The notes: generated by a model not told the origin, from the sequence alone. 64,000 nt of DNA from Orbicella franksi (GCA_964199315.1 OZ116698.1:10540001-10604000), one strand, 5' to 3'. Shown: positions 31,103 to 52,090, numbered from the stretch's first letter. Program-made: numbers and translations.

Positions 31103-34100
31103 TTATGGAATCCCCGCAATTTCCCGCGGTCTCACATTTTCTTTAAACTGCCCTACGATGTTTCCCGGAGGAAAGTACCGCCCGACGACAACATTTCTCC
31201 CATCGGGGGCAACAGCCATTCCCATGCCAAACTCCTCTGTCCCTACCCAAACTAACTGGGTGAAATGGCTCGTATCAGAAGTGTAGCCAGGGCAGTCGAA
31301 GTCGTAATCTTGCACCTCATCGTACCACATGTCAACCGCCCCACGGGCGGAGAGCGAGCTATCCCATGTGTATGCCAAGTTCTCCCCGCGGTCTTTTTGT
31401 CCGCTGTGCGTCAGCGAATTGGTCTTAACCAGGCGCTCTGCGTAATTCTGCGCTTCTGCAGCCAGCAGTGGAGACCAGCGCAACGGTGGGGCGTTGTGAA
31501 ATGTACGGTAGTAATTATGTGAGATGACGCACTCAGTTTTAAATTTTTCTGATGATGTAAGAAGATTATGAGATGAGTTTACACAAATGAGAATGTGAGT
31601 GATAAAATAAAATAATAAAAAAATAACCTTTTTACCCTCGGCAGTGTTTAAAGCATAAAAGCTAGTAGGGCCGAGGAAACAACAGACACAAATAATTCAA
31701 ATTGAACATAAAATCGTTAAGCATCCCAACTGGCCGGATGTAAACCATTTGGCTATTTGCAAGCGTGGCCGAGGATTTGAACTTGGGGCTACTCTGAAAC
31801 AAATCCAGGTAGTGTCGAGAGAAGAACTCGAACCCGGGACCGCTTGATTGCGAGTCCGACGTGCTGACCACTCGGCCACACTGCCTCCACAGTGATGAAA
31901 TATGAAGCGCAAGTGTGCGAAAGTAGAAGAGACCCACTTAGGTAGTAGGGGTTTTTTCGGAGACTTCAGAAAGCAACTAGTGTTTTTACTTTGGTTTATA
32001 TAGAGGTGGTCTTGCTCTGCAGTTATTTGTTAGACGCGGACATCACAGCAAATTGCCTCCAAAACCTGAGCGTAACTGTTTTGCTCCGTCATTAGCCAGT
32101 CCCGGTGGATTTAGCTGTAGTATTGTAGCTGTGCCCAAATATCGAATTAGCATTTAAAACGCTTATTCTACTTGATTTAGATTTTAATAAAAATTACTTA
32201 TTGCATATCGCTCTTGATCTTTAACCAGTGGTCTGAAATTAATACGGCTTTCACCAACAAAGTCAGATTACACTGTTACTTTACGCACAGTGTACAGCAC
32301 AAATGTAACAAATTGTATTGAATGGCGGACATTCAATGCCTTCAAGCTTGAAGTTTTGCAAATCATCAAGTCTATTTGCTACCGGCAGCCAGCAAATCAA
32401 AGACCGAAATGCGCATTAGTGTGCAAACTCTAAGTTATTCATTGTCACTACCTCTTTCCGCTGGTGTTACTGGCGGAAGACCCGATCTTGAACGTCTCCT
32501 TGCACTTGATCTTCGTCTTTTCAGTCGACCTGACGAATCTCTGGGGGCTTTAATATTGTCTTTAAACTCTCCAACGATGTTTCCCGCCGGTTTATACAGT
32601 GCTGCAACATATTGCGTTCCATCGTCAGCGACACACTTCGCTACACCCAACTCGCGCGAGGAGGCCCAAACGACTTGCGTAAAATTACCGCACTTGGCAT
32701 TGTAAGCTGGGACTTCAAAATTGTAATCCGTGGTTTCTTTATACCACATTTCGACGACTTCAGAGCCATTTAAATCTTTCCCGTGTACGCTCAAAAGGTT
32801 TTGGCCTACTGCTTTTCCGTCGCAACGTTCGAGACAATTCACCGATGCCATATGTTCCGCCCACTCTTTTGCGTCAGCGGCCAGCTCGTCAGACCATGTC
32901 AGCGGTTTAACTCTGTGTTGTCGGCGGTACAAGTTGTGTTCTAGGAGACAGTTTTGCTCAAAGTCGTCTAATTCTGTAAAAAAAACAGAAACTGTGTTAC
33001 ATATCAAGTGCTTAACATTTAAAACTTCAGTTGAAAAGAAAAGAAATCTAACCTTCCAAATCAGCAGATGGGGTCGAGGACAGCGATCCTTCACTTGATA
33101 TATTTTGTTCACCGGAAGAGTCACTACTTAAATTCTGCTCCGTTTTTTCGTCTTTCGTTTTACTAGACTCAGAGACGTCTTTCTCTTTAGCAGGTTCTTT
33201 AGATAAACTCACGTCCTCTTTGTCTCCTCTTTCGCCAGAAGTGTCTTCTACCGTAGTCTCTGCAAAACTTTCCTGAGTTGTTATTTCTTCTTGTTCTCTT
33301 GAAAGGCTTCCAGAGTGTTCTTGGCATTCGCTGCTAATTTGGTAATCCGCCTTTTCTTCCTCCTTAGCTTGAACTTCAATAGACTCGGCTGCTTGTCGAA
33401 TCGAAGATGACGTCATGGTCTCGCCTAATTCATCTTCGTGTAAAGTTTCTTCACTACTAGAATGCACATCAGAATGGAATACATCCTCATCTCCTTCTTC
33501 TCCTTGGAAACCAGCATTTTCGTCATCACAGTCTTCATCAGACTCGACTTGGCTCAACTTCTCCTCTAAGATAACAAATGACTCCAGCCGCTCGTATTCT
33601 TCCAATTGACGCTGTTCCTCTTCATCCAGCTCGTCTTCCGGGGAATCATCGATTTCAAATTCTGGAGATTCCCGGATTTCCTCCAAGGCCATGTTTTCAA
33701 ATCCTTCTTCGAAGAAACCTTCTGGAACGGGCTCCTTTTCGGCTTTAAGGTCATCCTTGACGGATTCTACAACGTTGTTCTCAACATCATTTTCCTCTTC
33801 AGGAATGACATAGATCTCTCGGTGGTCCGGTATATCTTCTTCACCAGAAGATTCAAACTCATCACTATATCGCACCAGTATGAATTCTTCAAGGTTTTCT
33901 TCTAAGGGATCTCCCTGTCGCACGTAAGTTTCAGTGTACGAGGCTTCGCTTTCGACTTCCTCATAAGCTGGTTCTAAGCTCTCTGTCGATGACAGCTCTA
34001 CATAATAGCGTGTGGTAGCACTCTCATCATCCTCGTACAGATCAACTTGGCTCAAGTCGAGCGGTTGCCTTCGCGGTTTTGTTTGCGCTCGTTCGGGGTT

Positions 34101-37100
34101 TTCTTCATCGACCCATCTTTCGGAAATTCCTGTGTCGTCCGTTGTTTCATGCTCTTCGTCTTTACTCGACACGCCTTGTCCGTCTGTTTCTCTAGAAGCT
34201 GAGATATCTACTTCTTCTTCAAACACTGCATAAACCGCGCTTGGTTCAACTTTCTCGGCAGGCTCCCGAACTTCTTGAAACGCTGATACTTCCAATTCCT
34301 CTTCCAACTCGGGTGAATGTGTTCTAAGTTCAGTAGTTTCAACTGGCTCACGTTCAAGGTTTTCCTTGACCGGCTCATCACTACGTTCATAAGCTGAAAC
34401 TTCAACTTCCTCTTCAAACGTAGACGCTTGCATTGTGCTGTCGTTGGTTTTAGGAGACGTCTGTACTTGTTCCTGTACTTTTTGCATTTCCAGTTCTTCC
34501 TCATAAATAGGTTGCACTTCGCTGATCTCCACTTCTTCCTCAAAGAGTGGTTCCTGTTGATAACCTTCAGGGACATCGCTCTCCTCCTCTCGGTCAGGTT
34601 GGTTTACTTCTTCTAATGAGCCTTCCTTCTGTGCTTGCTCGTGAATTGGTCGTCCTTCACTGATCTCTACCTCTTCCTCGTAGATAGGTTCCTGTTGATC
34701 GCCTTCGTAGATATCGCTCTCCTCCTCACGGTCACTTTTGTCCATTCCGTCCACTGATTCTGCCTTGGAAGATCTCGACTGGCTACGATCTATACTTTCC
34801 ACACCCTCCCCACGGAATTCTTCCTCTGACAACGCTTCATCCATACGCATGATGTCAATTTCCTCTTCAAACTGTTCCCCCGCCGACTCTTCCTCAAGAG
34901 AGGCCTCGTCATCTTTCAAAATAACCAACACGTCATCCTGTGTTACAACCTGTTGAATTTCCTGAGCGTCCTTAACTTCAGAGTGGACAATGAAACTCTT
35001 CACAAATGTGGTCTCTCTTTCCACGGTTACACGTGGGTTCATCAAGGGAGTCTGCTGCTCTACTGCCTTGTATTCCATCACTTCGGTTTTAAGAAGGCGA
35101 ACTTCCGTTTCGTCCTCCGAGAGTTGTTTTTCGAACTTCGCAGATTCTTGATCTTTAGCTTCTTTCTCCAAAATACCCTCACTCAGTTCATCAGTTGTTT
35201 TAAATTGACGTACGTTGTCGCTCTTTTCCCAAGAAGTTTGGTTACTTGTTTGATGAATTGGAGTAAAAGATACTTCCTGAAATTTCTTGACTTCCTCGTG
35301 AAGTATACCTTCGCCTCCATTTTTCTCTGCTTTGTAGCAGATTTCCTCGCTTGCAAATCCAGTCGCAACGTAGGAGTTGGTAGAGGATACCTGACGCGTT
35401 GTTTTCGTTGCAAGAACCTCGACTTCGTAAGATGTTTCCATTTTCCTTGCTTTTTCTCCCATAAAGATTTGTTCCCCGTGTTTTGTCTCTTTACTTTCTA
35501 CAACCTGGTAGCCTGTAGACTTGATTTCAACTGATCTTTTTTCTGTCTCGCTTACAACCGTGAACGTCTGGATCTCACTTGCGAATCCTTTTTCTTCATT
35601 AGGCTCAGAAACTCGGCTTTCGTCCTTAACTTCAATTTCCCAAACCTTTTCTTGGATTTTTTCTTCTCCACGCACACTACGTTCTTGTTCAACGGTTCTT
35701 GTGTAATGTTCAACGCCAACGAGAGGCTCTTGTGCGGCGACTAATTGTGCGTTGTCAGTCTCGTCCCAAAGTTTGTCTTGTTGTTCTGCAATCTGCGGAC
35801 CACACCTGACTTTTTCCGAAACAACGGGTGCAGGCTCCTTTGAACTGGCCAAAGAAGTTTCACGTCCAAAGACCCCCTCCATTTCTTCATATTCTTCCAA
35901 AAAGTCTCTTTCACTTAAGTCGTCATCCTCTTCTGCACCAGCATGGTAGTCAGAGTCGGAGAACTCCGCAGCCGTCTGTAGTGGGGGCTCAGAGATGACG
36001 AAACTAGTCTCTGTTTCTAAAGGTTCCTCGACTTCGTGGTACGTCTGAGCTGTTTCAATCACAACTGATTTCTCGTTCAAGACATTTTCTTCGTAGATTC
36101 CCTGTGGTGACAGTTCTTCTGTTATGTACAGGGATCGTAACCCTTTGGATACTGACTTCTCCGAGATGTAGTCACTTTCCTCGTATGGTATAGCATGGTA
36201 AGTTTCGGTACCGTATTCTTCGTTGATTGTTTCATAATCTTGGAAATCTCTGAGTTCACTGGAGACGTGCAAAGGTGACGACGAACACTCAGATATCAAT
36301 TCTGACGCGGAACCCTCTTCGTTTTCTTCAAAAGGCTCAGCAAATTCCCTTCGTTCTTCTACATCTTCTATCTCTAGTGTAAACTCCGATTCGCAGGAGT
36401 CTGCTGTCACATGGGAGTGAGAAACTTCTTGGTCTTCCGTCGGATATGAGACGACTGTTTCTCCGTTGTCTTCGTATCTTTCCTTCTCTATATCATAGTC
36501 GTCTTCTGGCTCTTCTTCTACATAATAGGCATCATCTTCTTCATTTTCTGATAATTCACCAGAAAGGTTTACAAAAATAACGGGCACCTCTGTTTTTTCC
36601 CGTTCGTCGTACTGTTGCGCTATCTCGGTTCTTGTTTCGACCACTTCTGTGGATTCCTGCTGTGCGGCATCGATTTTAAGTTCCAATGCAGCGGCAGCAA
36701 TGCTCAATAAAGATTGTGGAGACTTCAGAACTACAGTGATAGCTTGCACCTCCGTTTCCTCAATCTCTTCAGCGCACGCTCCTTCGTCTGGTTTCTCCTC
36801 CTCAGACGATTCCTCTGGTGGTTCAATATTTGACAATTCTCCAGCTACATGAAATGAAGGCTGGGTTGTTTTGAGAATTTGGGTTGTGGTTATCAATTCT
36901 TGGCTCTCCTCATACGCCAAACTTTCTTCCACTTGCAAAACCTGTTCCAAAGCCTGATCGTGGGTGTCAATGTTTTTTATTTCTCCGGCAATGTGTGCGC
37001 TTTGTGATGGATCAATCAATATTTGAGTACCACAGATGCTCTCAAATTCTTCAAACTGTTCGCCAAAATCGGACTTGGGGGATTCATCGTCAGCTCTTAC

Positions 37101-40100
37101 TTCTAAGAGCTCTGAGCTGGTAAACTCGCCAGTGACATAATCGTTTTGATCTACAATCTCCAGGGAAACATAATCGTAACTGGCCTCATCATAAGTTTCT
37201 TCCAACTCTCGAGCGTGCTCTGCATCTAGTGTTGCCTCTTCATGTACTTCTTCAACTGTTAAAATGTCGAATGCTTCACCAGCAATGTCCATGGGAACGG
37301 AAGGTGTGGTGATCGTCACTTCATCCACAGACGAGTCTTCCTCCACAAAAAGAGACGCCCGTTTGTTTTCATCACTTGTCACCTCTGCAATCTCTTCAAA
37401 ACTTTCCATGCTTACACTCTCGCCAGCAAGGTGCGTTGGAGATGACGGTATATCACTTATCAATTCGTCTACTAGTGTTTCCTCTTCTGCAAACATTGAT
37501 GCTCGTTTACTTTCTTCAAAGAGTGCTTCCTCGACTTCTTCAAAGCACTCAATATTTTGGCTTTCTCCGTCAATTTGTTTTGGTGAGGAAGGAGTGTCAG
37601 TTTCAACTTCAATAACATCTGTACCTCCTTCTACATACAGTGATGCTCGCATGCTTTCTTCAGAAGGTTCTTCATCGACGTCTTCAAATGATTCAACATT
37701 ACTTTCTCCTGCAATGTGCTTTGGCGAAGAGGGAGCACCAGTTTCAACTTCAACATCTGTATCCTCTTGTAAAAATATCAATCCTCGTCCACTTTCTTCA
37801 ACGGGTTCTTCGCAAATTTCTTCAAAGGACTCGGCATAATTACAAGTTTCGCCTGCGACGTGTTTCAGCGAAGAGGGTGTATCAGTTGTCACTTCATCAA
37901 CAAGTGGTTCTACTTCAAAACAAACCGATGCTCTTTTGCTTTCTTCAATGTGTTCTTCCTTAATTTCGTCGAAGGGTTCAGCTTGTCGACTTTCGCCTGC
38001 AATGTGTTTGGGCGAGGAATGAGTGTCAGTTGTGACCTCATCTACAATTGATTCTACTTCTCCTCTTTTGCTTTCATTGATGGGCTCTTCATTAACTTCG
38101 TCAAAGGATTCCGCTTGTCGACTTTCGTCCGCAATATGTTTGGGTGAGGAGGGTGTACCAGTTGCCACCTCATCTACAAATGGTTTTACTTCAAAAAACA
38201 CTGATGCTCTTTTGCTTTCTTCGATGGTTTCTTCATTAACTTCGTCAAAGGATTCAGCTTGTCGACTTTCGCCCGCAATATGTTTAGGTGAGGAGGGCGT
38301 ATCAGTTACCACTTCATCCACAAGTGGTTCTACTTCAAAAAACACTGATGCTCTTTTGCTTTCTTCGATGGGTTTTTCATTAATTTCTTTAAAGGATTCA
38401 GCTTGACGACTTACGCCTGCAATATGTTTGGGCGAGGAAGGAGTGTCAGTTGTGACTTCATCTACAAGTGGTTGTACTTCAAAAAACAGCGATGCTCTTT
38501 TGCTTTCTTCGATGGGTTCTTCATTAATTTCGTCAAAGGATTCAGCTTGACGACTTACGCCTGCAATGTGTTTTGGCGAAGAAGGAGTGTAAGTTGTCAC
38601 TTCATCTACAAGAGGTTCTACTTCAAAAAACAGCGATGGCTTTTTGCTTTCTTCGATGGGTTCTTCGTCAATTTCGTCAAAGAATTCAGCTTGTAGACTT
38701 TCGCCCGCGATGTGTTTTGGCGAGGAGGGAGTATCAGTTCCAACTTCATCTACTAGTGTGTCTACTTCTAAAAACACCGATGCGCCATGGCTTTCTTCCG
38801 TCGCTTCCTCATGAATATCCTCAAAGGTTTCAACATTTCGGCTTTCTCCTGCAATGTGTTTTTGCGACGGAGTGTCTCGCACTACCTCATTTACAATGGA
38901 GTCCTCTTCCTCAAATAAGGAAGCACACTGTTCTTCTAGGGTTTCGTTTTCTTCTGAAGCAACCTCTGTTTGTTCGAGGGTTGCACCTTGTACAGCAGTA
39001 CATCTTGGAGAAGAGGGAGTTTCAGTCGCTCTGTCTTCTGCTACTGCGTTCTCGTCCATATATAATGATGCTGGCCTGCGTTGTTCAGCTTGTTTCACCT
39101 CAATGATTTCCTCTGTGCGTTCACTTTGTCTACTTTCATGAGAAATATATTCAGAGGAAGAAGGAATAAAATACACTGCCTCATCAACTGTTCCATTTTC
39201 CTCAACGTAAAATGAAGCTTGCGGAGTTTCTTCGTTTGGACTTGTTTCTGTCACAGCCTCCTCGAGGCGTCGAGTTTCAGCAGCTTCATCTGCAAATGTT
39301 GTGTCGTCTTCTTCCAGGCGACGAAACATCTCTTCAAAGTTAATCTCAGATTGAACATCTCGACGGACGTCGGCCTCGATATGCTCTGCAATCTCTGGTA
39401 ACTCAATCACTCTTGATGATTTAGGTGTATGATTATAATGTAACGGCTCCACTGACTCGTCAAAAGAGTGCGTTATGTCAGATGAGACGGTAACTAAACC
39501 GAATTCTAAACCAGTTTCCTCAAGAACCTTCGCGCGCTCTTGATCGTAATCACGAAGAGCGGCTTCACAAGACTGTTCTTCCATGGAAGTATCAGTCCTG
39601 TCCTGAGTGATTTCGTCCTGTGACTCTTCTTTTTCAATTGAACTCTCCAACCGGACCTCTAACTCTTTCAGGTCCATTGCGTTTTCAGGCGGACGATCTC
39701 GTCTACCTGATTCAATAATGGTCTCGCGAACAAGTTCAACTAAATCTACAGGTTTCGAGGTTTTGCACTCGTAGTGTAGAGATATGTCTGGCTGAGATTC
39801 CTGTTCTTCTTCCAACGCGCTCGTTAATACAAGTCCAATGTCAACACCTACTTTTTCTATATCCGCTGTACGTTCGCTTTCATGATCTCTCAATACAACC
39901 TGAACGGTGTCCAGAGACTCGGTTGTCTCAAGACGTTCCATACTAGTTTCGTGTATTTTTTTCGCTTTTTCATTTTCTGTCTCGCCATTTTCGAGTTTTT
40001 TAAACAAGGCTTCAAAATCTATTTCCGATTCTACGCTGTCTTTAAGAAAGGCCTCGCAGATCTCTTCAACTGGTGTTCTTTCCTGTTGTTGCTCACGATC

Positions 40101-43100
40101 ATTTCTGTTGTTCATAAGATTTTCCACAAACTTTCCTTCCGTTGTTTCGTGAAAATCGGAAATTTCGTCACTGGCCCCTTCACTTTCGAAAGTCGACGAA
40201 ATTCCCATTCTAGAAATAAGGTCTTCCATTCGAATATTTACGTGATCTTGTTTTACCGCCAAGTAACAAAACTCAGGATCTGACGTTCTTTGAAAAGATG
40301 CTTGTGGCACCTCAATTAGCGCCTCGCTAGTTTCAAAACGTTCTTCACTGTACTCATCTGGCACATCTTCCATGAAATTCGGTGGTTCATCTTCGCACAA
40401 TTTGAAAGTTTCAGTTTTTTGAAATTTCGTAGCGGTGCTCAATTTCGTTGACGCGTAAACAGTTTTTGTTGAAGATCGTGGTTGCTCTTCCTCCTCCGTA
40501 ATATCAGCATACTGGTGTGACGCATCCTCGTCAGAAAAATCAAAGATCTCCATAGCAGATGGCTCTTCTTCCATAAATTCGTGAGTTACGCAGACGCTGT
40601 CTTCGAACTCATAATCTTGAAGGCCCTCATGCCTCGTTTCACAATTTGTGTAATCCAGCACGTCCTCTGCGTCCGATACACTTACCAGACTTTCATTTTC
40701 GTCTTCGCCCTCGTCGTCGAATATTTCTACGTGTGACTCTGCTTCGTCTCCTTCTCTGTGAGCAGGAAATACGTCATCAAATTCCAACTGGCATTCGTGC
40801 TCTTCTTCCATTATTTCTTCTTCTTCCTTCCTTTCTTCTTCTTTGTGAAGCGATTGCCTTTTCTTTAGAGAAGCCAGTTCTTCCAGTTCTTCTTGAATGA
40901 GACTTCGCCTAAGTGACGATTCTGAATTGGAGGGCGATTGCCTTCCATGTTGATACGTTTCAAAGAAAGCTATTTTGGAGAGGACGTTTCCTTTATGCAT
41001 TTCTGGTTCGGTACCATCCGAGTCTAATGAGAGAGAACGTCGAATTTCACAGAAATGTTGGTAAAGATCGTCCTCGGGATCAGAAAACAAATCAGCCTCT
41101 TCCAATTCGGCCTTCTCCGTATGTACCAATGGTTCCTCAGTCACGCAAGTAAGATCTGAAGAGAAAAGGCACGATGTTACAAGCTAACAGGTAAAGATTG
41201 TCACATTCAAGAGAAAAAAGTATGCTTGCGGTAAGTTGCGTTTTGAAGAGGTCAGAAGCCATTACAAAATAATAAAGGCAATGAGATCTCTAATGATGTA
41301 CATAAGCTGCAAAACTGGAATTTACTTTTCATGCAATACAGAATGGCCTCTCCTTTAATTTAGATTTGGAAGCTATTATAATGCCTCTCGGAATCCGCTT
41401 CAGGAATGCTTGTTTTCTTACCGTCTTCTTCTGTCGCGTTATCCATTTCATACGCTGTCCTAGCATCTTCTTCTTCTTCCTGCTCTCTTTCATCTTCTGG
41501 TTCGTGATCATTCTCTTCCTGGGCGGTCTCCTCTGCAACTCCTTTCCTCTGAAGAGTGGGACTGTTAGGATCTATCCACACCAGGCGGGTGAAGTGATCG
41601 CTTACAGACAGTGTGTTTGCAGAATCTTGCTCGTCGGCCCTGTGGAGGATATTCTCGTTCTCATCAAACTGGTCCAAGTCACTGAGGGGGGAAAGTGTCA
41701 ATGACACTAAATCAGCATATCGGCAAACTAAGGGATGAAATCTGATATCATCCATCAAGCGCATGGAAATATAGGCTCCTAAATTCTTAAACCCTCTTCT
41801 CCTCTTCCTGTTTTAAAGACCATTGTTCCCTTCAAACAGATATAGGAACTGGTATATTCGTGTTAGATCAAGGCTCCGTTAGAGAACAGTCATTAGTATA
41901 AAAACAACGGAAACAGATATAACAACACAGCTGTTCTCCTTTTCATGTATCTGTATTTCTCATCTTGGGAAAATGTCAATATTTTTTTCTGGGGGAGGTC
42001 ATGGGTTATGAATAGGCAAGATGAGGAGAATTTAAGATTAATCACTACTGGGAATTAAACTAAATGTAAATACTTCTGCTACAAGATTGAAACCAATCAT
42101 TTCTGAATTTTTTTTTTTTTAATAACCGCGCTAAGTTAGTGATTAGCTTGTTAGAGAATTAAAGAAATTTGAAAGTTGTTTAACTTCGTGTAGTTATATT
42201 CGTCACATCTTAAATATTATGTTAAGAGTATTATAGGGAAACAAACGACTTCATTAATTTGATTCACTTGTCGTTTGTATAAATAATATTATTGGATTAT
42301 TGTATTAAGTTATTTTCTATATTTTTGTAAGAAAAAGACGTTAAGTAAATGTTAGGAAGAATTATGCTTTTTTAAAACTTATTGGTTATAACGTTTTTGA
42401 AGACTATTATATAAGTTTCAGCTAGCTGTTCAAGTTAGATACTTATTTGTTATGTATTTAGTTTCCCAAGCGTTACTTCGCGTTAATATTTTTTAACGTT
42501 CATTTTGTTTTAACAGGGAAAACAAATTTAATTCAGTTTGAATTTGTTTAGATAAAATCGCCACCTACCACAAGTAGTAAGATATTACTTAGCAAAGAAT
42601 GATGAAACAGCGAACGAAAGAAAAAGAACAAAATAAGTATGAAAATATGAGTCCAGTCAGTGGAGGCAAATGAGTCGTCAGTGACTAAAACGTAGTTGAG
42701 AAGGTCAACGGAGGGGGTTAGTGAATGTTCAAAAGGCAAAAGAAACGTTAATCGGTCATCAGTGAAACTGTCCGAAGTCAAGGGACGTCGAAATTGTTTT
42801 CAGAGTCAGAAAGTAACGAGAGTATAAACGAGCAAAAAGGACGAATGGAATATTAGACAAGATCATTCACCCAAAGCTTAAATCAAAATTACAAAGAAGA
42901 GTTTAAAGGTTAGGTTAGGTAGCCTTTCCCATCACCTCGAACGCCGCCAAGTCTTTTGGTCGTGTGCAGCGAAAGGCGTTATCAGATTGAAGATGTCAGA
43001 GTGATTTAATAATGTCACTGTTTTAAAGGGTTTAGTCAAGTTCGATGATTAGAATTTCCGAGTAAAAGAGTTAAGGAGTGTTTACTTTTGGCTTATAACG

Positions 43101-46100
43101 CGAGTGTTTAAAACATCTTATCATGATTGGCGTGAGCAACTTCAGACTACGTTTACAAGAGAGCAAAAGTTAGCGAATTCTTCAGGTATCTGGAAAATCC
43201 TGGCCTCGGATTCGCCGGGTTTTTCTTTATTTTCTTGGTTTTGTTTCAGTGATTGTTTGTTTTTTCAGATGGGTGCTTTTATTTGTCATATTGAAATTCG
43301 GGAATCAAAAGAAAATTTTACGCTGAAATGTTTGTGGTAACCAGCTTTGTAATAAATGCGGTCGCGTATCAAATATAGTTAACAATAACAGCACGTGATT
43401 ACCCTTCAATCGCTAACTTTATGAAATTCACCAAACTTGTCTCCCGAAACCTTTATGGCATTGTAAAAAAAAAAAAAAATAGGACAATGGTGATCATAAC
43501 ATAAGACGAAATAAGGGACTACTCAAATCCAGGAATTACTTGTCTCAGATCTATCAATTACTTTATCAGTCCGCTCCAATGTAGTAGGTTCCGTGTTAAA
43601 CGGTATACGTACAACTACAAAAAGAATAATAAAGAGTTATCTTAATTCGTCGGCATCGTACTGTGTCTTGTAGTATAACCGCATAAAGGTGGGGCAACAA
43701 AAAGGCTGTTTTTTTTTTTTTTTTTCTCAATTCTGATTTCATCTTCTGACAGGGAACTTTTCTCGCGAATATGAAACTATTATAAAATCAAATTTTCATT
43801 TCATCGGCCTATTCAGACTGGCCTTTCTTGAGCAGTATAAAACAATGATGACAAGTAACACTACCATTTGCTGTCATTCTGGTATGTTTGGTCTTATAAC
43901 TTGGAAGTTTATCGGTACAGACTCTTTTAACCATGTATGCATGAATTGGGGGAACCTTACCATGGCAATGGCGAAGAAAAGAAATTGTGCCAACAATAAT
44001 TTTAATGCTTACCGCGAAGTACACAAACTGGGCTATAAGAGATAACAGGAAGGAGACGGGAATATTACAGTCCCAAGAAACGTATGTTACCCACCCTCAC
44101 CACATTCGTTTTGTCTGCCGAGGCATGAGCCAGTGCTCATTCAAATTCATTTATATCATACTCCTGAGAGGACAGGCAATCACACATGGAAGCTGGTTTG
44201 CGCAAGCTAAAATAATGACCATAGTTCAACTCTCTACCTCTGGGGATCGAGCCCTATAAATTAGAGAACTTGAATTTTCATTCTTTTTCAGGGGAAGTTC
44301 TTCCCTGCACGCAACCAAACGAATTCTCTTGGCTATACCTACGCGTTATGTAACTACCGCACAAAAAGAGAAAGGTTAGCAGCAAAATTTCACAAACGGA
44401 TCCGTACGGTTGACGCCTTGGCGCGCGTTAACTTGCGAGACGGAACGGACAAGAGAGGGAACAATTTAATGATTTTACTAAGGACATCCGAATACCGCGC
44501 GACTTTTGCTCTCGTGTCAACGTACTCCGTGAGGGATCTGAGCAAGGCGGACAAACGAGAGTTCATACCTCCAACTTAAACTGGCGGCCATACTGAGGGG
44601 AGGGGAAAGGTGACAGCTGTTTCGACACTGGTCCAAGTCTTCTAATAAACGGTTTAACAGAAACTTTGCGCGGGTAAGTCCACTCCCCTGAGGTGCTTGA
44701 CAACTAAAGTGGCGACACAAATCAACATGTTAACCAGCTGTTTGATCAACGGCCAATATTCGTCTCTGCTAAAAGAAACCTTCGTCATTGTTATTCCGCG
44801 TTCACGTGATGATAAAATACTGTTTCCGAGGTTAAAGCCTGTTAAACGGTTTTGGGGAAGCAAAGATTGTCTACGTCCCGTGCAAAGCGATAAGTTTGCA
44901 AAGAAACTACTCTGTCGCATCCGCAGGAAAGTGAAATACTTATCCATCGGCCTTCAACCCTACTTAAAAGTTGTGGTGGAAATATTGTCGTTTTGTCCTC
45001 CATTTATACGCAGTAAGCAACGAATGTTCAGTGTTAAACAAAATAAAACACTGTGACTTCAAACTCAAAAGCGTGTGTGAAATCAAACCACTGGCATGTT
45101 GTACGCGGCTGCATGAGTGTTGTGATTGGGTGGTTTAAAGGCACATGCATACTAGCCTAGACGCTATGTATGTGCATTAATATTTGTTACCTCCTCTTTG
45201 TAGTGTCGCCCGCTAACTCACCAAACGTCTGCGTATCTGGAGAAACAAGAGAAGTGATAATTCATATTTCGTGCACGAATAACGTACTGGAAAATGTAGT
45301 CGATTTTGGTTGGAGAAAAATTGGTGGAAAGTCGTACAAAGGATGCAGGATCATTTCCAAAGTCGGCCTAAATAATAAACCTAGAGGTAATTCAAGATTG
45401 CCGAAATACAAGATCCTTCGAAAAGTTTCGAAGTTTGCCGAAGGCTACCGAACAAGTCGATCGATGACGCTTGATGAATCCAAGCCCTTAAGTAATTACT
45501 GTATGCGTATAAATACCTAAACGAATAGAAAAATCCCCTCCCCTGAAGAGACTTTCGTGTATTTTGCGGGACCATTAGTACCTTTCGCATTACCAAATCA
45601 AGAGCCAATAAGGCTAAAGGTAGCAGAGCAAACGCATCTTGAAGCTAACAATTGATGGGGTCTCGCGTCGTGGCCGAACCATGAGAGATCGCGAAAAACA
45701 TGTCATTTCTAAATCAAAAATATAATCCACACCTTCGTTTTCCCAGCTCAGAAAGCTGTTGGTGGACTTGCTGTCGGTTCGCACTCGGTATCTGTATTCA
45801 ACATGGAATATCATTGGTTCACAGCTGCCTCTCTCGTGTCCTCTTCGCTTGACATTCTGTACAAACAGCCCGTCTATGTTACCTACAGGCTCGTACCGTG
45901 CCACCACTACAGTCACGCCTTCCGCCCCGGTCGCTTTACCCACGCCAAACTTACGACTGCTCAGCCACACCAGCTGGCTAAAGTCAAGTGTCTCGTTACT
46001 GAATCCGGGACTGTCGAAATCGTAGTTCAAGATTTCTTTGTACCAGAGCTCAGAGACCTGGGAAGAGTAAGGGAAAAAAATGGTTTTCGTTATCTTAATA

Positions 46101-49100
46101 TATACGCACGACCTGATCACGGGATCAGGTTTAACAAGTGGTCAGATCGTGCATCTCCAAACCGAGGCAACGGCGTCGCTTAGGTCAGAATGATGTTCAA
46201 GCTGTTATTTTCTAATGCAGTTTAATAGTTTTTTCCTCCATAAGGAGCTACAATGTTTTGAGACGTGTCTAATGATAAGCTCTCAATTACAAGCCGTTAA
46301 ACACATTTCATTTATGCTGTTTTGTTTTTGCGCTGAATTTCCATCGACAGCAAGTGCTGTGCAGCTAATACGATTGCACGTTCGCCAATAGTCAGCCAGT
46401 GCAACAGTGACGAACAATTCCCTAAGACCCGTGTTCTACAGTATTCTATTACCTTAATCCCACTGATGTGCGCCTTGTCTAGCACCGCCACACTGATCCC
46501 TATCCGCGAGTTATCCAGTCCCTCCATGGCGCCCGTCACAAGCAGCCGCTCGGCCCAGTACTGCGCCTCATCTGTTAGGGCACTGCTGAGAACTAGCGGT
46601 GGAGAGCCATGGCGGGCTCTGAAGTAGTTGTGTGTCACAAGGCATTCCAGGCGAAAACTTTCTAAATCTAACGGAAAATACAGAATCAGATCCTAGACCC
46701 ACACAGGCCGTCGAAATCTAACGTTTCATTGAGATTTGGATCGACATAATTGTAAATTTTCGGATTCGTATTGATTTTATCAGTACGAATGCCACGTTCC
46801 ACGCCATCTTCTAGTCCTTTGGAAAGATCATGCTGCTTAGCAACCTCTCTGGTAAAAGAGAAAAGGGTTCTCGTCAGAGAAGGGACTCTCGTCCAAAATG
46901 AGACCAGTTTTTCTTTTACTGTATACCACTGTATTCAGTGAGACTTATTCTATTGTTGTACCGACAAATTCTCAGAAGTAACCTCAAACGAAATGTGTGG
47001 TCGTCAGAAATGAGAATTTGTATTTTGAGCTTATGATTGAAGGGGTTGAAACTGAAAGGGATTGGAAGTTACCACTCACCAGGAGCGGGCGGTACAAAGC
47101 CCTTTAGTTCTTTACTCTTTCTCTCTCTAACAGCCGACCCCATACGAAGAACGTTATCAGCAAATGACCCCTCCATGTTCCCAGGAGGCTCATAAAATGC
47201 TACCACCACGCAGAGATCTCCATCAATGGCCCTACCGACTCCGAGGGACTCTGAAGCGACCCAAACGACCTGCCAAAAAAAAAAAACAAAATTTGTTAGA
47301 ATTCAATGCGGCAAATATACGTGCTGTAAGAAGGTATCTTTACTCAAATGTAGGAGTGGTGATCTTACTTTATTTTATGACAAAAAGAAGGGTAGAGTAA
47401 AAAATAAATAAATGAATAAACAGTTGCGGAAACACTCCAGAAACGCTTTCAGATCACTGCTGAAGAACACAGTGAGCCTTCATGCCAATTTACGGAAGTT
47501 CCACTTGCAGCACATTATATTCCCTAAGGAAAGATTTAGAGAATGTGACATTACCTGCGTGAAATTTGACGTATCTTCGCTATACCCTGCGCTGTCAAAG
47601 TCATAATCTTCTATTTCATCATACCACATGTCCGTCGTCTCCCGGCCAGAAAGCTCGCCGCCCATCATTCCCGCCAAATTCTCACCCACTGTGTCGTCAT
47701 CGTTGTGCCGGAGCTCGCCACTTCGCGCCAAGTTCTCGGCCCACTGCTGTGCTTCCCATGCGAGCTCCGCTGACCAGTGCAAAGGAGCCGCTCCATGTCT
47801 GAGCCTGTACTCGTTGTGCACCGAGAGACATTCCTCGTGAAACTCTTTAAGTCCTGGGTCAACGAGTGAAATTAATTTGTTGCGAAAGCTGGTTAGAAAA
47901 TAGTTTGGTAGGATGTTTATTTACAAGATGTCACCCGATAAACATTGAACTAAATACATGTTTTCTCTCGGTAAACCTTGAAACAAAGTGTACTAGTCAG
48001 TACCGATTAAGGTGGCTCCCTATAGTTTTACGATCGCACGAGCGCTGAGGAAGTAATCTGCGCGCGCTCAAAGGAAACGTCAGTGTTTTTCGATATTTTA
48101 TTACGTCAACATGAGCACAAAAAAGCAAAACTGACAGTGAGTTTTCTCGCGTTTCCTTCGGTGAAATTCCGTTAAATTTGGCAGATTGGTAGTAAATATT
48201 TTATTTTAGTCGGAGCTCGTTTTTCAGGGAAATCTATAAGACCAGATTTTTTGCAGCGGTAAAAGACATAAATTTGAAAATATCGAAAAAACTGCCTCTA
48301 CAAACCCTACTTTATTCGTGTTTAAAATTCGTATCCCGCTGGAAGCGATGTGATGTAAACATTTTGGAAGATTTCACCGTAGGAAATTCATGAAAATCAC
48401 AAATAAAGCCATAAAACAGTAAAAAATACATTTGTTTGAGCATTTAAAATTCAAGACTAAATCCCAAAATTTTAACAGAGATGATAGCAAAATACTATTT
48501 AATCATTGTTTATTATATGTATTAAGTTTGAGAGGACTAGGTGTGAAAAGCGAATGCGAAACAGCATTCAAAACATAACACTTGCGCGCGCAACGCCATA
48601 AATGATTATCCTATGGAGACACCTTAAACTCAATAAGAAAAATAATGAGATGTACATATACTATCATTCGAGAATCTATTTCGTGGTTCAAGTAAAGTCA
48701 TTATCACAAGCAACTCGAACTACCACAAACATTTCTTAGCGAGCGGTTGAAAATTGAGCACACAATGAGAGACGTCTGTTGTCATTAAAAGTTAGTTGCC
48801 ATGTCATTTTTTAACGGCAAAAAATAGAAACATGCTTTCGCGTACGTGCTGTAAGCAATGTGTCAGCGGATCTTTGTTTATTTCCTCGTTAGGGTAAGTT
48901 ATATTTAACTTGACTGACATAAACATTTGATGAATTGATCAACACTGTAGTATTTAATGGAAGGGTAATGCTTAAAAAGAATTCAGTATAGTCATTTTTT
49001 TATACCCGTTTTCTCTTATAACTTATCTGTGAAGCCGCAAATTCACTCTCTTCCCTATATCACCGCATACACAGTATCAAAAACAATCAACATTTCCCAA

Positions 49101-52090
49101 AACTTGCTAATATAATTTTATTCGCGCAAATACCACACAAAAATTTTTAATAATGAATGGTTTTAACAGAAACAATGACGCCAGTGTAGTGGCTCGTTTC
49201 CAAATCAATTGTGTGCGTGGGGTTTTTATTTTTAATTTTTTAGACTCAAAGTGGGAGAATTTCCGTTTCACAGTGTTTACGTTCGGGATAAGCTGCGGCA
49301 GTTAAACTTCAAAACGACTGCACCGATTGAATAGAAGTTTCGATAAAAATAAAGCTCAAGATGTAACAGCACTAAGCTGCTCTGTCGTATAATTGCATAT
49401 TCAGTTCCACTTACAGCAGGTACAGGTGGTATAAAGAATTGAGCCCGAATCCAGCCTTTGTTTTTAACCGCTGTAGAGATGAAATATCTATGGCGCCATG
49501 TTTCTGATTAGGAATAATTTTTCGCGAAAATAAGGGAAAAGACTACAGAAACGTGTCGTTAGTTTTGCAACATGTTCCTTTCCTCAAAAAAAAAAAAAAA
49601 TGGACCCTCAAACACTTAAAATCTGTATTATAAAACGAACATTTTTAAAATTCACAGACAATTTTCAGTGAGATGAAAGCGTCACTGCCACTCTGTGGAA
49701 ATTAACCAGAGTTCTAATCGTTGCGAAACCAACCAAATTTCCACAAAACTCAAATAAATTAGCTTGAGTTGTTTTGACGGTCAACAATCGTTTCAACTGG
49801 TGGATGGAAAATAATTCGTTCATAACATATGCAAAACAAATAAATTTCAATTCGAGGAAGTTCGAAAAATTGTCTGAAGCATTCGCAAAGGCTCACAAGG
49901 AATCTCTTAGTTGGTTTCTTATTATTTGATCCATCGACTCATTCCGAAGAAGACGAAAACCAGCTTTTTCTTTTCTAGATGCAACAGGTGATCAATAACG
50001 ACAATAGGTTTACCTCAGTTCCCTTAATCAACCTCCCGTACAACAAAAACGAAAACAAAGAACAGAAAAGAAAAAGCTAAAGAGGAGATTCAAAATGACA
50101 AAAAAAACCAACAACAACAACGAAGATATAATCGGAAAGTCCTAACGTTTCCACAATATAGTTGAAGAATTACAAGTTACTGACCTAAAGAGGAATTCTA
50201 GAATTAAATGCAAATTTCACCACTTTAAGAACCTATTAAAAAATTGGTCAAAACAACTCGATCGATAATAAAGATTCGTTTTTCCCTCATTCATTGTTAA
50301 CTAAACCGGTGCAAATCTTTATCCAATAAAAGGAGAATCCATCGAGTAAAGTTTTTCGCTAAACCGCTTTGAATAAAGCATCAGTACTTTAAAGACCATG
50401 AAAGTGACATATTTTTGTTTTAATGCAAATCGATTCAAAATCTTAGCGGACAAACCTAGTAAACCAAAACAAAGCGAGACAACTTCCGCTGAATCCGGCG
50501 CAATGCCCAAGCAAAGTCAAATATTTGCAACACTCTACAAACTGACTGAAGAGTTATTACATCGGCGGAGTCGCGTGCTCAATCGTTGCTTTAGAATGTT
50601 CGTCGATTGCCTATTTCTCGAGAACGTCGACCGACCACGTTGTTGTTGTTAAAATTAACGAATTGATCAACGGTGTGTGCAGTTTTCATTCATTTTAATA
50701 ACATAAAGATCCTCCCAGAGGCTGAGTTTTGATTGAATATACGTAGAAATAGTTTGCTGCGACAATCTGTATCCGAGACGCGCTTTTAAATTGACGTCTG
50801 AGTACCCGAGCAAACAACGAAAATCGCATGATTTTTTTCCCCTCTTGTCGACAATGAATTTCAGTGTCGTACATGTTAATAGCATGCGAACGTCGATAGA
50901 AAATATATTCCCTAAATATTGCGCTCATGTCTAATGGCTTGGAGACCGTAATGACAAGGAAAATCGAGAAAATTCAATATTATAAAGATATTAAACGTGT
51001 TTCAATTTTTCACTTCTACATCAATCGAATGAATTAACGTTCTCGAATTGTTTTATTTATTTCAGGCAGGCTAACTTGTGAACAAAATGCAAATGAAAAA
51101 TCTAAAGCACAGCGGTCGCCATACGAGAGCGAAAAAATAATGCCATTTTCTTACCAAGATAGAGTCTGCTCCAGCGTGTATCATACGCCAGTGGCTGTTC
51201 GTTATCTTGCGTGCTTCTTGCTTTCTTCACGTTTCTCGCCACATCTTTTTTGTTCATTGGGGGAAAATACCGTGCCACCACGATCTGTTTTCCGTATTTG
51301 GTGACAGCCGCTCCCGCGCCAACCTCGCGCGTACCCTCCCATACCACCTGACAGAAAGAGCGCGTTCGCGAGCTAACACGCGGCTTGTTATGACCAAAAT
51401 ACTTTCCCTCTTCGTACCATATTCGAGTCACCTTCTGTCCGTTTAGTTCTGAGCCCCACAAGCAGACGAAGTTCTCGCCGATGTCCTTCTCGGAGCTGTA
51501 TCTGGGTGAGCCGGTACTTGCGAGATGCTGTGCCCAACTCTGCGCGCTCTCCGCGAGTCTAGATGACCAGCACAGAGGCGGTGTTCCATGGGCTGCGCGA
51601 TAGAAGTTGTGGGCAGCTACGCATTCATTGCGAAAGCGCTGCAAGTCTGAGAATAAAACGAACATGGGGCGTTAGCTCATGCGAAGTTATTGACCAGCGA
51701 TCTACGGAACGCCTGAAAACTGACAGAATGACAAACTACAGAAAAATCGTGAACTCCCATGGCGGTTACTTTCCTCATTCACCGCTCAGTCAAATTTGCT
51801 CGACTAAAGCTGACCCTGACTAAAAATTGAAAGCCTCCTCGACGATCCTTCGAACAGAGCTTTCAAACGACAAAAATCTCACTCGTAAACTGAGTGTTTG
51901 ACTCCGAATCCGTGTCAAATGCCAACATAGTTCCCTATGAAGTGTTATTAAGCTTCTGTAGTCTTCAATTCGATTTTCCAGACTCGCGCGTGAGCCAGCC
52001 AAACCAGAACTGACACCGATCACAGAGCGAAGGGAGAACAATTACAATAAGAATACTTCCATCATAGCCCAACTCACCGCTTTTTTCCAT
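31103..52090 (-). CDS. Giant multi-CAP (SCP/GAPR-1-like) protein: CAP1-CAP2-CAP3-decayed CAP-acidic region-CAP4-CAP5, about 3692 aa
   Basis: Minus-strand exons: 52078-52090 (MEKS, least certain), 51155-51646, 47555-47853, 47080-47269, 46453-46667, 45733-46057, 45222-45236, 44569-44641, 41422-41807, 33053-41155, 32452-32973, 31103-31548. All are GT-AG with compatible phases; total 11079 nt, a multiple of 3. Each CAP shows HN.(Y/F)R..H...PL, G.N/S, WY.E and F.Q(V/L)VW..ARY.P-type motifs. No signal peptide. AATAAA lies about 60 nt past the stop (31038-31043). Confidence 0.85.
31645..31888 (-). mobile_element. tRNA-derived SINE (family 2)
   Basis: Minus strand: GGAGGCAGTG, A box TGGCCGAGTGG, B box GGTTCGAGTTC. 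The body (CTGGATTTGTTT..GTTCAAATCCTCGGCCACGCTTG..) is unrelated to the SINE at 1397. Confidence 0.8.
33053..41155 (-). CDS. Single 8103-nt exon encoding a Glu-rich, probably disordered 2701-codon region of the multi-CAP protein
   Basis: Uninterrupted ORF (track ORF 33048-41144). Acceptor CTTTTCTCTTCAG and donor G|GTTAGA, phase 1 at both ends. Confidence 0.9.
37200..39140 (-). repeat. Coding tandem array, 144-bp (48-aa) unit, about 13 copies
   Basis: The HIAG-equivalent anchor recurs at 38995, 38851, 38707, 38563, 38419, 38275, 38131, 37999, 37855, 37711, 37570, 37426 and 37282 (spacing 144, once 132, once 141). Consensus TPSSPKHIAGESRQAESFDEINEEPIEESKRASLFFEVEPLVDEVTTD. Confidence 0.95.
48011..48623. 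mobile_element. Non-autonomous DNA transposon, Kolobok-like
   Basis: TTAA|GGTGGCTCCCTATAG ... CTATGGAGACACC|TTAA: imperfect TIRs with RR..YY ends and a TTAA target-site duplication. A piggyBac would end CC..GG. Confidence 0.65.

Follow-up and report, generated by a model that had tools for sequence, protein, structure and literature searches.

The 64,000 nucleotide stretch of Orbicella franksi DNA analyzed here (GCA_964199315.1, OZ116698.1:10540001-10604000; the window) contains on its minus strand, between an ATG at 52090 and the end of a stop codon at 31103, five CAP domain coding segments of the GAPR-1 type and a very long acidic open reading frame. A preliminary description had read these as one giant intracellular protein, with three CAP domains at one end, two at the other and an acidic spacer between them, and had compared it to a molecular ruler or tether. 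The locus thus raises the questions of whether these parts form a single gene, whether such an arrangement is found elsewhere, and what a protein built in this way might do.

Structure and transcription of the gene

Translation of the exon model gives 3,681 amino acids without internal stop (417 kDa, pI 4.3), compared with 3,682-3,684 amino acids for isoforms X2 and X1 in the RefSeq record of Orbicella faveolata ("titin-like," XP_020612380-84, isoforms X1-X5). The preliminary description, which had put the length at about 3692 residues, is confirmed in this respect. The protein runs CAP1-3, a spacer about 2,880 residues long (2,700 of which are supplied by a single exon), and CAP4-5, the latter two joined through a polybasic linker; all five CAP pieces lie on the minus strand, as do all features given below, in the 3 + 2 layout and at the positions first proposed.

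The coding part of exon 1 (52078..52090) reads ATG GAA AAA AGC G and is followed by a GTGAGT donor; it encodes M-E-K-S and ends in phase 1, and upstream of this ATG the stop-free frame extends only 27 nt. The RefSeq X2 start (MEKSDLQRF) matches the model, and the Stylophora, Montipora, A. digitifera and Actinia proteins begin with M-[E/D]-K-[S/G]. RefSeq X1, X3, X4, and X5 begin instead with MFVLFS, from an alternative in-frame ATG at 51665. The CAP1 exon (51155..51646; 492 nt, phase 1-1; Pfam CAP E=7e-15) is separated by a 3.3 kb intron from the two CAP2 exons (47555..47853, 299 nt, Pfam CAP E=7e-14, and 47080..47269, 190 nt; 489 nt in total, phase 1-1). The CAP1 donor at 51155 is joined to 47853 in cDNA contig L001, and the first CAP2 exon has GT-AG junctions in L001 and L002. 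CAP3 is also split, into exons at 46453..46667 (215 nt; Pfam CAP E=5e-6; junctions seen in cDNA) and 45733..46057 (325 nt), which make up a 540 nt module. A 46 nt linker micro-exon (45191..45236), present in L001 and L002 with GT-AG borders, and a 135 nt cassette exon encoding 45 amino acids (44569..44703), present in L002 and RefSeq X1-X3 but missing from L001, X4, and X5, are followed by a linker exon (41422..41681) that has two acceptors, 41681 in RefSeq X1 and 41639 in L001 and L002. The introns ahead of this linker exon are 2.9-3.6 kb long, and it encodes the conserved stretch F-T-R-L-V-W-I-D-P-N-S-P.

The giant exon (33053..41155) spans 8,103 nt (2,701 codons), lies within an open frame at 33051-41183, and is contiguous in three cDNA contigs. 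It is followed by the CAP4 exon (32452..32973; 522 nt, phase 1-1; Pfam CAP E=4e-18), near whose end the conserved polybasic linker R-L-K-R-R-R-S-S-A-R-R-R-S-R-S is encoded (32483-32527), a 903 nt intron (31549..32451), and the CAP5 exon with the stop codon (31103..31548; Pfam CAP E=8e-20, GAPR-1 1SMB E=9e-34). The 3′ UTR (30701..31102) reaches at least to 30701, where L001 and L002 end.

Contig L001 (10,890 nt) joins CAP1, CAP2, CAP3, the micro-exon, the linker exon, the giant exon, CAP4, CAP5, and the 3′ UTR; L002 and L003 are consistent with it, and every junction from CAP1 to the 3′ UTR is present in the assembled cDNA contigs with GT-AG borders, so that the gene is transcribed and spliced to a message at least 11 kb long. 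This full-length chain combines short-read assemblies with junction reads, and exon 1 lies outside its RNA-supported part. Depth of polyA reads on the giant exon is about 5-13 (run X24), like that on the CAP4 and CAP5 exons, and in the 3′ UTR region (30800-31193) it is 9-15. The joint between the giant exon and CAP4 (33053>32973, a 79 nt GT-AG intron) is crossed by eight polyA reads and occurs in one Logan contig and in all three cDNA contigs, and that between CAP4 and CAP5 (32452>31548) is crossed by seven reads and is present in L001. The 903 nt CAP4-CAP5 intron is retained in L002 and L003; its read depth is 0-1.3, versus 4-9 in the adjoining exons. It contains a repeated element (about 31740-31900), and loose ends and very high contig depth are found at 31744-31888.

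CAP1-3, the giant exon, and CAP4-5 are thus parts of one transcribed gene, as had been proposed. The contrary reading, in which three separate genes (CAP1-3, the acidic ORF, and CAP4-5) have been joined in error by annotation, could appeal to the long introns, which might conceal promoters, to L003, which begins within the intron ahead of the linker exon, and to an Actinia isoform (X6) that lacks CAP1-2. Against it stand the cDNA junctions and the reads that cross the last two of them, the lack of any in-frame ATG ahead of the domain in the CAP4 and CAP5 exons, the phase 1 common to all modules of the exon model, and the preservation of the layout in at least six genera; it is close to refuted, and we give it almost no weight.

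The giant exon is of phase 1-1 in the exon model, as the preliminary description had noted, and its skipping would keep the reading frame. The short isoform envisaged on this ground is found neither among the five RefSeq isoforms nor in the three cDNA contigs, and the RNA reads have no loose ends at the CAP4 acceptor that would indicate skipping; in the data seen, inclusion of the giant exon looks constitutive.

Five CAP domains with position-specific character

Pfam family PF00188 matches five stretches of RefSeq X2/X4 with 273 bits in total, above the curated cut-off. As single exon pieces CAP1, CAP2, CAP4, and CAP5 match at E values of 7e-14 to 8e-20; CAP3, whose halves are weak alone (27.7 and 19.4 bits), is the most degenerate of the five. 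The domains are GAPR-1-like, as first described, in that GAPR-1 (1SMB) is the best solved-structure match for four of the five, CAP1, CAP2, CAP4, and CAP5 (E 3e-23 to 9e-34); CAP3 has no separate solved-structure match. The second-best solved match is the CAP domain of yeast Pry1 (PDB 5ETE, 5JYS), which differs in being a secreted glycoprotein with one such domain; the aromatic loop pattern required for Pry1 sterol binding, Y-x-F-x-x-x-x-[Y/F], is retained in the alignment by CAP2-5. An AlphaFold2 run on residues 1-660 with an eight-sequence alignment gave no usable multi-domain model (pLDDT 33, pTM 0.26).

GAPR-1 (GLIPR2; PDB 1SMB, 4AIW) is a single domain of 154 amino acids and about 17 kDa, whereas the coral protein has five domains in 3,681 residues. 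A signal peptide is missing from both, and the preliminary description had said so for the coral protein. Its N-terminus is hydrophilic, and the highest 19-residue Kyte-Doolittle window is 1.46, none reaching 1.6; the protein has neither a membrane-spanning segment nor an amphipathic basic one. This lack of a hydrophobic window, together with an N-terminus that aligns with GAPR-1's own start, is the evidence for non-secretion. Within that alignment Glu2 of M-E-K-S is opposite Gly2 of human M-G-K-S, on which GAPR-1 is myristoylated. Residue 2 is Glu in Orbicella, Stylophora, and Montipora and Asp in Actinia, and the A. millepora X1 protein, with a different predicted start (MLQS), is likewise without Gly2; the absence of this glycine had been correctly noted.

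Human GAPR-1 is basic, with a pI of about 9.4, whereas four of the five coral domains are acidic. CAP1 alone is basic (pI 9.7, net charge +10), and CAP2-5 have pIs of 4.3-5.8, the lowest being that of CAP2 (4.3). GAPR-1 docks through Lys7 and Lys33 (PMC13690689); in the alignment CAP2 alone retains Lys7, and no domain has Lys33. The two membrane- or lipid-binding heads imagined in the preliminary description, an idea that borrows from GAPR-1, are not supported by these substitutions, by the missing Gly2, or by the presence of only one basic domain. The CAP tetrad His-Glu-Glu-His, which lines the central cavity and in which His54 and His103 bind Zn (PMC6900432), is complete in only one of the five Orbicella domains. 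CAP5 has the His54/Glu65/Glu86/His103 of GAPR-1, but in Orbicella the corresponding residues are Y-E-E-S in CAP1, H-E-E-N in CAP2, G-I-E-D in CAP3, and R-Q-E-N in CAP4, and the His pair is gone from all four. The complete tetrad occurs in corals only in CAP5 and in Actinia in CAP4, not CAP5; tetrad states are conserved per position across species. Each domain contains one to five Cys, and the CAP disulfide pattern is absent.

The acidic spacer and its conserved motifs

The giant exon product is 21% Glu and 7% Asp, with a net charge of −537 and a pI of 4.1, and carries a tandem array of 48 amino acid repeats; the acidic, repeat-bearing spacer of the preliminary description is therefore real. 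No Pfam domain is found in the giant ORF or in the linker exon. A fossil sixth CAP domain in the linker was considered and rejected: the CAP HMM built from 25 domains gave only 0-3 bits, the hhalign probability was 2.7% over 10 columns, and two correctly ordered motifs, H-x-S-P-P-L and H-F-T-R-L-V-W, are not significant. Composition and one AlphaFold2 run suggest that the spacer is mostly disordered.

The core of the repeat array (37299..38729) holds some 11 strong copies, flanked on both sides by weaker ones; TRF reports a period of 144 nt and 7.1 copies. The consensus opens P-S-S-P-K-H-I-A-G-E-S, and S-F-D-E-I/V is present in each repeat. By HMM there are 16 copies in Orbicella, nine in Stylophora, 15 in A. 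millepora, 10 in Montipora, 24 in Desmophyllum, and none in Actinia.

Several short spacer motifs are conserved beyond the corals. Near the N-terminal end of the spacer (40758..41102) the alignment shows E-E-A-D-L-F-S-D-P-E-D-D-L, V-L-S-K-I-A-F-F-E-T-Y-Q, and E-C-Q-L-E-F-D-D-V-F-P-A-H. The most conserved island (33417..34064) equals the CAP domains in conservation, with 70 invariant columns among 30 sequences and a sliding identity of 0.74-0.89 over four orthologs, versus no more than 0.72 against Actinia. It includes the E-E-F-I-L-V-R-Y segment (33795-33890) and an invariant block of 25 residues (33534-33608), Q-L-E-E-Y-E-R-L-E-S-F-V-I-L-E-E-K-L-S-Q-V-E-S-D-E, that is identical from Actinia to corals. 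AlphaFold2 predicts a helix over this block only (pLDDT 86-90) and disorder in the remainder of the island. In the block only eight of 25 third codon positions are the same in Orbicella, Stylophora, and Actinia, whose longest stretch of identical nucleotides is 8 nt; since the protein is the same while synonymous sites vary freely, the constraint acts on the protein. A miRNA site in the block, considered because the Nematostella "titin-like" gene NVE12992 is listed as a conserved miRNA target (PMC7935066), was rejected for this block, as the third positions vary and the longest identical stretch is so short. A search of the ESM Atlas with the island returned only low-scoring disordered look-alikes (best score 0.70).

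Relatives, age, and possible function

RefSeq/GenBank models of this gene, called "titin-like" or "GAPR-1," are available for at least seven species of coral as well as for Actinia tenebrosa. The 3 + 2 layout is shared with Stylophora (XP_022779870 and its isoforms), Acropora, Montipora, and the anemone Actinia, and five CAP stretches occur in each of the Orbicella, Stylophora, and Actinia proteins; D. pertusum has an ortholog of the spacer (P0011). The Actinia spacer as query found no further anemone orthologs in the searched length range. When the 25 CAP domains are clustered, they group according to position and not by species, so that the five-domain layout is older than the anemone-coral split. 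The layout, the character of each domain position, and the short spacer motifs are all conserved in stony corals and Actinia tenebrosa. "Titin-like" is a misnomer: at E<=0.01 Pfam finds CAP alone in the Orbicella, Stylophora, and Actinia proteins, with no Ig, FN3, or kinase domain, and the label is probably due to the low-complexity stretch rich in Glu.

The preliminary description knew of no protein with this layout. The gene model, with this layout, was already in public annotation; literature searches, among them searches by RefSeq accession (Orbicella, Stylophora, A. digitifera), brought up no paper describing it. Coral papers that mention GAPR-1 cannot be linked to this gene. Multi-CAP proteins of GAPR-1-like type do occur in other taxa, all uncharacterized: Hydra vulgaris LOC105846415 and LOC100206500, the fish Brienomyrus (LOC125746656), the lungfish Protopterus (LOC122790830), Octopus (LOC115217114), and the alga Haematococcus. 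These have five to nine tandem CAP domains in 900-2,200 amino acids, the domains lying close together, and lack the acidic spacer. One Hydra protein has a 590 amino acid gap, but its start is signal-peptide-like and its spacer is Ser/Pro/Asn-rich, not acidic. The conserved coral spacer motifs are in none of these multi-CAP proteins, and the two Hydra proteins were rejected as orthologs on these grounds.

Extended, charged, disordered spacers are familiar from the giant-exon ankyrins (480-kDa ankyrin-G, 440-kDa ankyrin-B), neurofilament-H/M tails, and the PEVK region of titin. The likeness is one of design only, a very large exon or segment placed between folded ends, without sequence or domain kinship, and ankyrin giant exons are alternatively included, whereas inclusion looks constitutive in the coral data. 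Coral acid-rich proteins and skeletal aspartic acid-rich proteins (CARPs and SAARPs) are also highly acidic and disordered, but they are secreted, Asp-rich, and far smaller, whereas the giant protein is Glu-rich, has CAP domains and no signal peptide, and is also found in a skeleton-less anemone.

The reading that we prefer, at about even confidence and from sequence features, is that the protein is probably cytoplasmic and serves as a scaffold or spacer of great length, with CAP clusters as its end modules. CAP domains bind lipids and sterols, have a caveolin-binding-motif loop, and form dimers (PMC4921858); given these properties and the sterol-loop pattern kept by CAP2-5, the clusters at both ends could be binding or self-associating modules. 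The polyanionic, mostly disordered spacer would hold them apart, with an end-to-end distance of some tens to more than 100 nm on a contour of about 1 micrometre (a polymer-scaling estimate), and would display conserved docking motifs, including the invariant amphipathic helix, to partner proteins.

More specific roles can be weighed against this scaffold reading. A membrane-to-membrane tether or ruler, in which lipid-binding CAP clusters are set at a distance by the acidic exon, is a reasonable guess by analogy with GAPR-1, though on balance unlikely. Negatively charged lipids and phosphatidylinositol are known ligands of GAPR-1 (PMC4921858, PMC13690689), and the basic CAP1, the conserved polybasic CAP4-CAP5 linker, the sterol-loop pattern, and a two-headed layout older than the anemone-coral split would all suit such a role; but the acidic CAP2-5 should repel anionic membranes, and the myristoylation site, nearly all of the docking lysines, and any membrane-spanning or amphipathic basic segment are missing. 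GAPR-1 is also a Beclin 1-binding regulator of autophagy (PMC13690689), which makes conceivable a platform whose CAP domains bind Beclin 1 and whose spacer carries many LIR-type motifs for ATG8. The giant exon encodes 43 aromatic-x-x-aliphatic cores, against 24 ± 4 in shuffles (about 1.8-fold), an enrichment inflated because repeat copies are not independent. The acid-flanked cores L-E-F-D-D-V, E-E-F-I-L-V, and E-S-F-V-I-L are kept in all five species, and S-F-D-E-I/V adds one per repeat; yet E-S-F-V-I-L lies within a confidently predicted helix and not an extended strand, Lys7, which GAPR-1 requires for Beclin 1 binding, has given way to other residues in all CAP domains but CAP2, and Actinia lacks the repeat array altogether. 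We regard this platform as rather improbable.

Still less can be said for the spacer as a bulk polyanion, that is, a calsequestrin-like Ca2+ or cation buffer of high capacity and low affinity, or a charge reservoir, for which the CAP domains would be only anchors. Corals handle large Ca2+ fluxes. Asp and Glu make up 28% of the 2,700 residues, and 101 Ser/Thr-x-x-Asp/Glu sites could contribute phosphate charge; conservation falls, however, on invariant sequence-specific motifs and not on composition alone, no ER or secretory targeting signal is present, and the protein also occurs in a non-calcifying anemone, so that this role appears quite doubtful. Unconventional export to the extracellular or skeletal matrix or to mucus would agree with the extracellular action of most CAP proteins, with the many coral skeletal proteins that lack signal peptides (about half of coral matrix proteins are without secretory signals, according to a preprint), and with the D. 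pertusum spacer ortholog. The protein's CAP domains, however, belong to the intracellular GAPR-1 type and lack the disulfide pattern, and an anemone without a skeleton has the protein too; export seems very unlikely.

CAP proteins form a widespread superfamily whose molecular function is poorly understood, and nearly all work has concerned small secreted proteins or single-domain GAPR-1. A non-secreted 417-kDa protein with five diverged GAPR-1-type domains suggests a structural, multivalent intracellular use of the CAP fold. At its boldest, and as a long shot judged from sequence, this ancient giant cytosolic protein could be an organelle tether or autophagy scaffold of a new class, in which a polyanionic spring would keep two lipid- and sterol-binding CAP clusters about 100 nm apart and would recruit conserved partners through its invariant helix and LIR-like motifs; the CAP fold would in that case gain a structural, intracellular use. 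The loss, position by position, of Zn-binding histidines and docking lysines provides natural variants with which to dissect the features of CAP domains. For coral biology, a large and strongly expressed gene stands under a misleading "titin-like" name, a label that can misdirect expression and proteome studies.

Gene structure, transcripts and splicing

The giant minus-strand ORF (33048–41144 from its start codon, 33051–41183 from stop to stop) is 99% identical to the Orbicella faveolata protein "titin-like isoform X4" (XP_020612383), which is 3,639 aa long and carries PF00188. RefSeq isoforms X1–X5 range from 3,625 to 3,684 aa, and the gene model is already in public databases, where the names of the sequence and the model are misleading; literature searches found no publication on the protein or its architecture. 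Spliced together between the ATG at 52090 and the stop codon that ends at 31103, the exons total 11,046 nt and translate without internal stops into a protein of 3,681 aa (417 kDa, pI 4.26). In this exon model the CAP1 exon (492 nt), the CAP2 (299+190 nt) and CAP3 (215+325 nt) modules, the giant exon (8,103 nt, residues 660–3359) and the CAP4 exon (522 nt) are all in phase 1 at both ends, as the preliminary description had proposed. RefSeq X2 and the orthologous N-termini of Stylophora, Montipora, A. digitifera and Actinia support exon 1 (M-E-K-S) as the probable start of the coding sequence, and in alignment its residues pair one to one with those of the human GAPR-1 start M-G-K-S; four RefSeq isoforms use an intron-1 ATG instead (M-F-V-L-F-S). 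No 19-residue Kyte-Doolittle window exceeds 1.46, so by this simple measure there is neither a signal peptide nor a membrane-spanning segment.

Three members of one 90% protein cluster map to JGI contigs of 10.9–12.5 kb (L001–L003), which align to the window as spliced cDNA. The minus-strand blocks of L001 are 51275–51154, 47854–47553, 47273–47080, 46668–46451 and 46059–45733 (CAP1 to CAP3), followed by 45238–45190, 41641–41422, 41156–33047, 32975–32452 and 31550–30701 (linker to 3′ end). With overlaps refined, all eight script-resolvable junctions are canonical GT-AG; the ninth, which joins the giant exon to CAP4 in L001, was read directly as G-A-A-G/G-T-T-A-G-A ... t-t-t-a-c-a-g/A-A-T-T-A-G. 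Raw polyA RNA-seq reads aligned to 30800–36700 (run X24) gave combined depths of about 3–14 (mostly 5–13) over the giant exon, 7–9 over the CAP4 exon, 4–5 over the CAP5 exon and 9–15 over the 3′UTR; junction 33053>32973 is spanned by eight reads and junction 32452>31548 by seven, and a Logan contig from a separate run contains both joints. The locus is a single transcribed gene, its full-length chain being given by short-read assemblies. We hold with very high confidence that the five-CAP structure belongs to one gene, and a chimera of separate genes is nearly excluded.

A short isoform made by skipping the giant exon, which had been suggested as possible, did not appear: at the CAP4 acceptor in run X24 no loose ends are reported, hence no alternative upstream donor at three or more reads, and the giant exon is present in all five RefSeq isoforms. 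The linker before the giant exon does undergo small-scale alternative splicing, with a 135-nt cassette exon (44703–44569; in L002 and RefSeq isoforms) and alternative linker-exon acceptors 42 nt apart (41639/41681; in cDNA contigs and RefSeq isoforms), all frame-preserving. L003 begins within the intron that precedes the linker exon.

The CAP4–CAP5 intron (31549–32451) is retained in two of the three cDNA contigs (L002 and L003), so that the protein would end after CAP4 (...P-A-E-R-G-S-D-N-E, stop) and lose CAP5, the only Orbicella domain with the full His-Glu-Glu-His tetrad of the CAP cavity. CAP5 is likewise missing from the GenBank model of A. cervicornis and from Actinia isoform X5. PolyA depth in this intron is 0–1.3, against 4–9 in the exons, which indicates that the retained form is a minority form or an unspliced precursor. 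The intron also holds a repeated minus-strand element (about 31740–31900) that includes a tRNA-like stretch and may be a tRNA-derived SINE; ARAGORN called no tRNA in it. RNA-run contig depth over it reaches about 570 with many loose ends, which suggests that other genomic copies are transcribed. Two tandem polycystin-1-like genes on the plus strand (3740–10680 and 19639–28884; REJ, PLAT, polycystin domain and PKD channel), with large exons, run towards the 3′ end of the CAP gene in convergent orientation.

The five CAP domains

Pfam bears out all five minus-strand CAP domains of the preliminary description: CAP1 (51105–51671, E 7e-15), CAP2 (47483–47920, E 7e-14; its second exon, 47072–47302, has no match alone), CAP3 (46315–46692 plus 45617–46141, two weak halves), CAP4 (32438–33127, E 4e-18) and CAP5 (31106–31696, E 8e-20). 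The top solved match for CAP1, CAP2, CAP4 and CAP5 is human GAPR-1 (1SMB), followed by yeast Pry1; CAP3 is too degenerate for a separate match. A fossil sixth domain at 41422–44703, where short H-x-S-P-P-L and H-F-T-R-L-V-W matches to the CAP profile lie in the right order, is suggestive and not significant (0–3 bits; hhalign probability 2.7%).

Aligned with orthologues from four corals and Actinia, the domains have tetrad states specific to their position. CAP1 has Y-E-E-S in the corals and Y-E-E-P in Actinia, CAP2 has H-E-E-N in all five species, and CAP3 is degenerate; CAP4 has R-Q-E-N in Orbicella and Stylophora, S-E-E-R in Acropora and Montipora and H-E-E-H in Actinia, and CAP5 has H-E-E-H in corals and H-E-E-N in Actinia. 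The Zn site formed by His54 and His103, which controls GAPR-1 oligomerisation (PMC6900432), is thus kept in one domain per protein only. GAPR-1 docks to membranes through a myristoyl group and Lys7/Lys33, and its binding of Beclin 1 requires Lys7 (PMC13690689); the coral and Actinia protein has Glu or Asp at position 2, and of the five Orbicella domains CAP2 alone keeps Lys7 and none keeps Lys33. The loop pattern Y-x-F-x-x-x-x-[Y/F], needed for sterol binding by Pry1 (PMC4921858), is retained in CAP2–5 and absent from CAP1. Domain pI values are 9.7, 4.3, 5.8, 5.2 and 5.5 for CAP1 to CAP5. The CAP4–CAP5 linker is conserved and polybasic (R-L-K-R-R-R-S-S-A-R-R-R-S-R-S), and its segment at 32483–32527 is the sole strongly basic one besides CAP1; R-R-R-S-S-A-R-R-R-S there is reminiscent of a nuclear localisation signal and also of a phosphorylation cluster for basophilic kinases.

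The spacer and its orthologues

The giant exon encodes 21% Glu, 7% Asp and 10% Ser (net charge −537), and neither it nor the linker exon contains a Pfam domain. Spacer identity to orthologues is 0.2–0.5 over most of its length and higher in islands. The best of these (residues about 3041–3240, 33417–34064) is as conserved as the CAP domains, with 70 invariant columns among 30 sequences; it holds E-E-F-I-L-V-R-Y...H-R-E-I-Y-V-I-P-E-E and a 25-residue block, Q-L-E-E-Y-E-R-L-E-S-F-V-I-L-E-E-K-L-S-Q-V-E-S-D-E, identical in the five species examined in detail. Only 8 of the block's 25 third codon positions are identical; synonymous sites are free to vary, and the constraint therefore acts on the protein. 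In the AlphaFold2 prediction from the 30-sequence alignment, a helix on this block (pLDDT 86–90) is the only part that is not disordered. The spacer also carries a 48-aa repeat array: Orbicella has about 11 strong copies, other corals have 9 to 24, and in Actinia the array is not detectable.

Orthologue searches, bounded by length windows and word indexing, found the 3+2 layout in RefSeq or GenBank models of Stylophora pistillata (3,449–3,508 aa), Acropora millepora and A. muricata (4,143–4,249 aa), A. cervicornis, Montipora foliosa and M. capricornis (up to 4,430 aa) and the sea anemone Actinia tenebrosa (3,217–3,754 aa); the spacer also matches a Desmophyllum protein and many unnamed giant ORFs in further coral assemblies. 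In a tree of 25 CAP domains the clades follow position, each uniting Actinia with the corals, so the five-domain arrangement arose before anemones and stony corals diverged, and the architecture is deeply conserved. The spacer is a single exon in Orbicella and in Stylophora (7,590 nt), whereas in Actinia (21566–32462 of its locus, L005) it is spread over three or more large exons (426, 677 and 1,770 aa); either corals have therefore lost introns or the anemone has gained them. Besides the form without CAP5, one predicted Actinia isoform lacks 537 residues around the conserved island. Going by the RefSeq name "titin-like," Nematostella NVE12992, listed among conserved or shared cnidarian miRNA targets (PMC7935066), could be a member of this family, and so, by its RefSeq name, could an entry in bioRxiv 10.64898/2026.03.24.713908.

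Possible roles and family relationships

We infer that the protein is cytoplasmic, that its spacer is disordered and that it works as a scaffold or spacer; taken as a whole, this reading has about an even chance of being right. The stricter version in the preliminary description, in which two membrane-binding heads work as a ruler, is improbable, and we place it lower because the GAPR-1-specific membrane determinants are absent and four of the five CAP domains are acidic. Rival readings make the protein a cation buffer, a product of unconventional export or an autophagy platform. Aromatic-x-x-aliphatic cores are about 1.8-fold more frequent than in shuffles, and three acid-flanked ones are kept in all five species; these LIR-like cores would be compatible with ATG8-type motifs.

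Other multi-CAP GAPR-1-like proteins occur in Hydra, mormyrid fish, lungfish, amphioxus, octopus, tick, fly and a green alga, but they are shorter than the coral protein, with tightly packed domains, and the motifs of the coral spacer occur in none of them; the Hydra protein with an internal gap has a signal-peptide-like start and a Ser/Pro/Asn-rich spacer. The coral and anemone protein is a new architectural variant inside the CAP/GAPR-1 family rather than a new kind of system.
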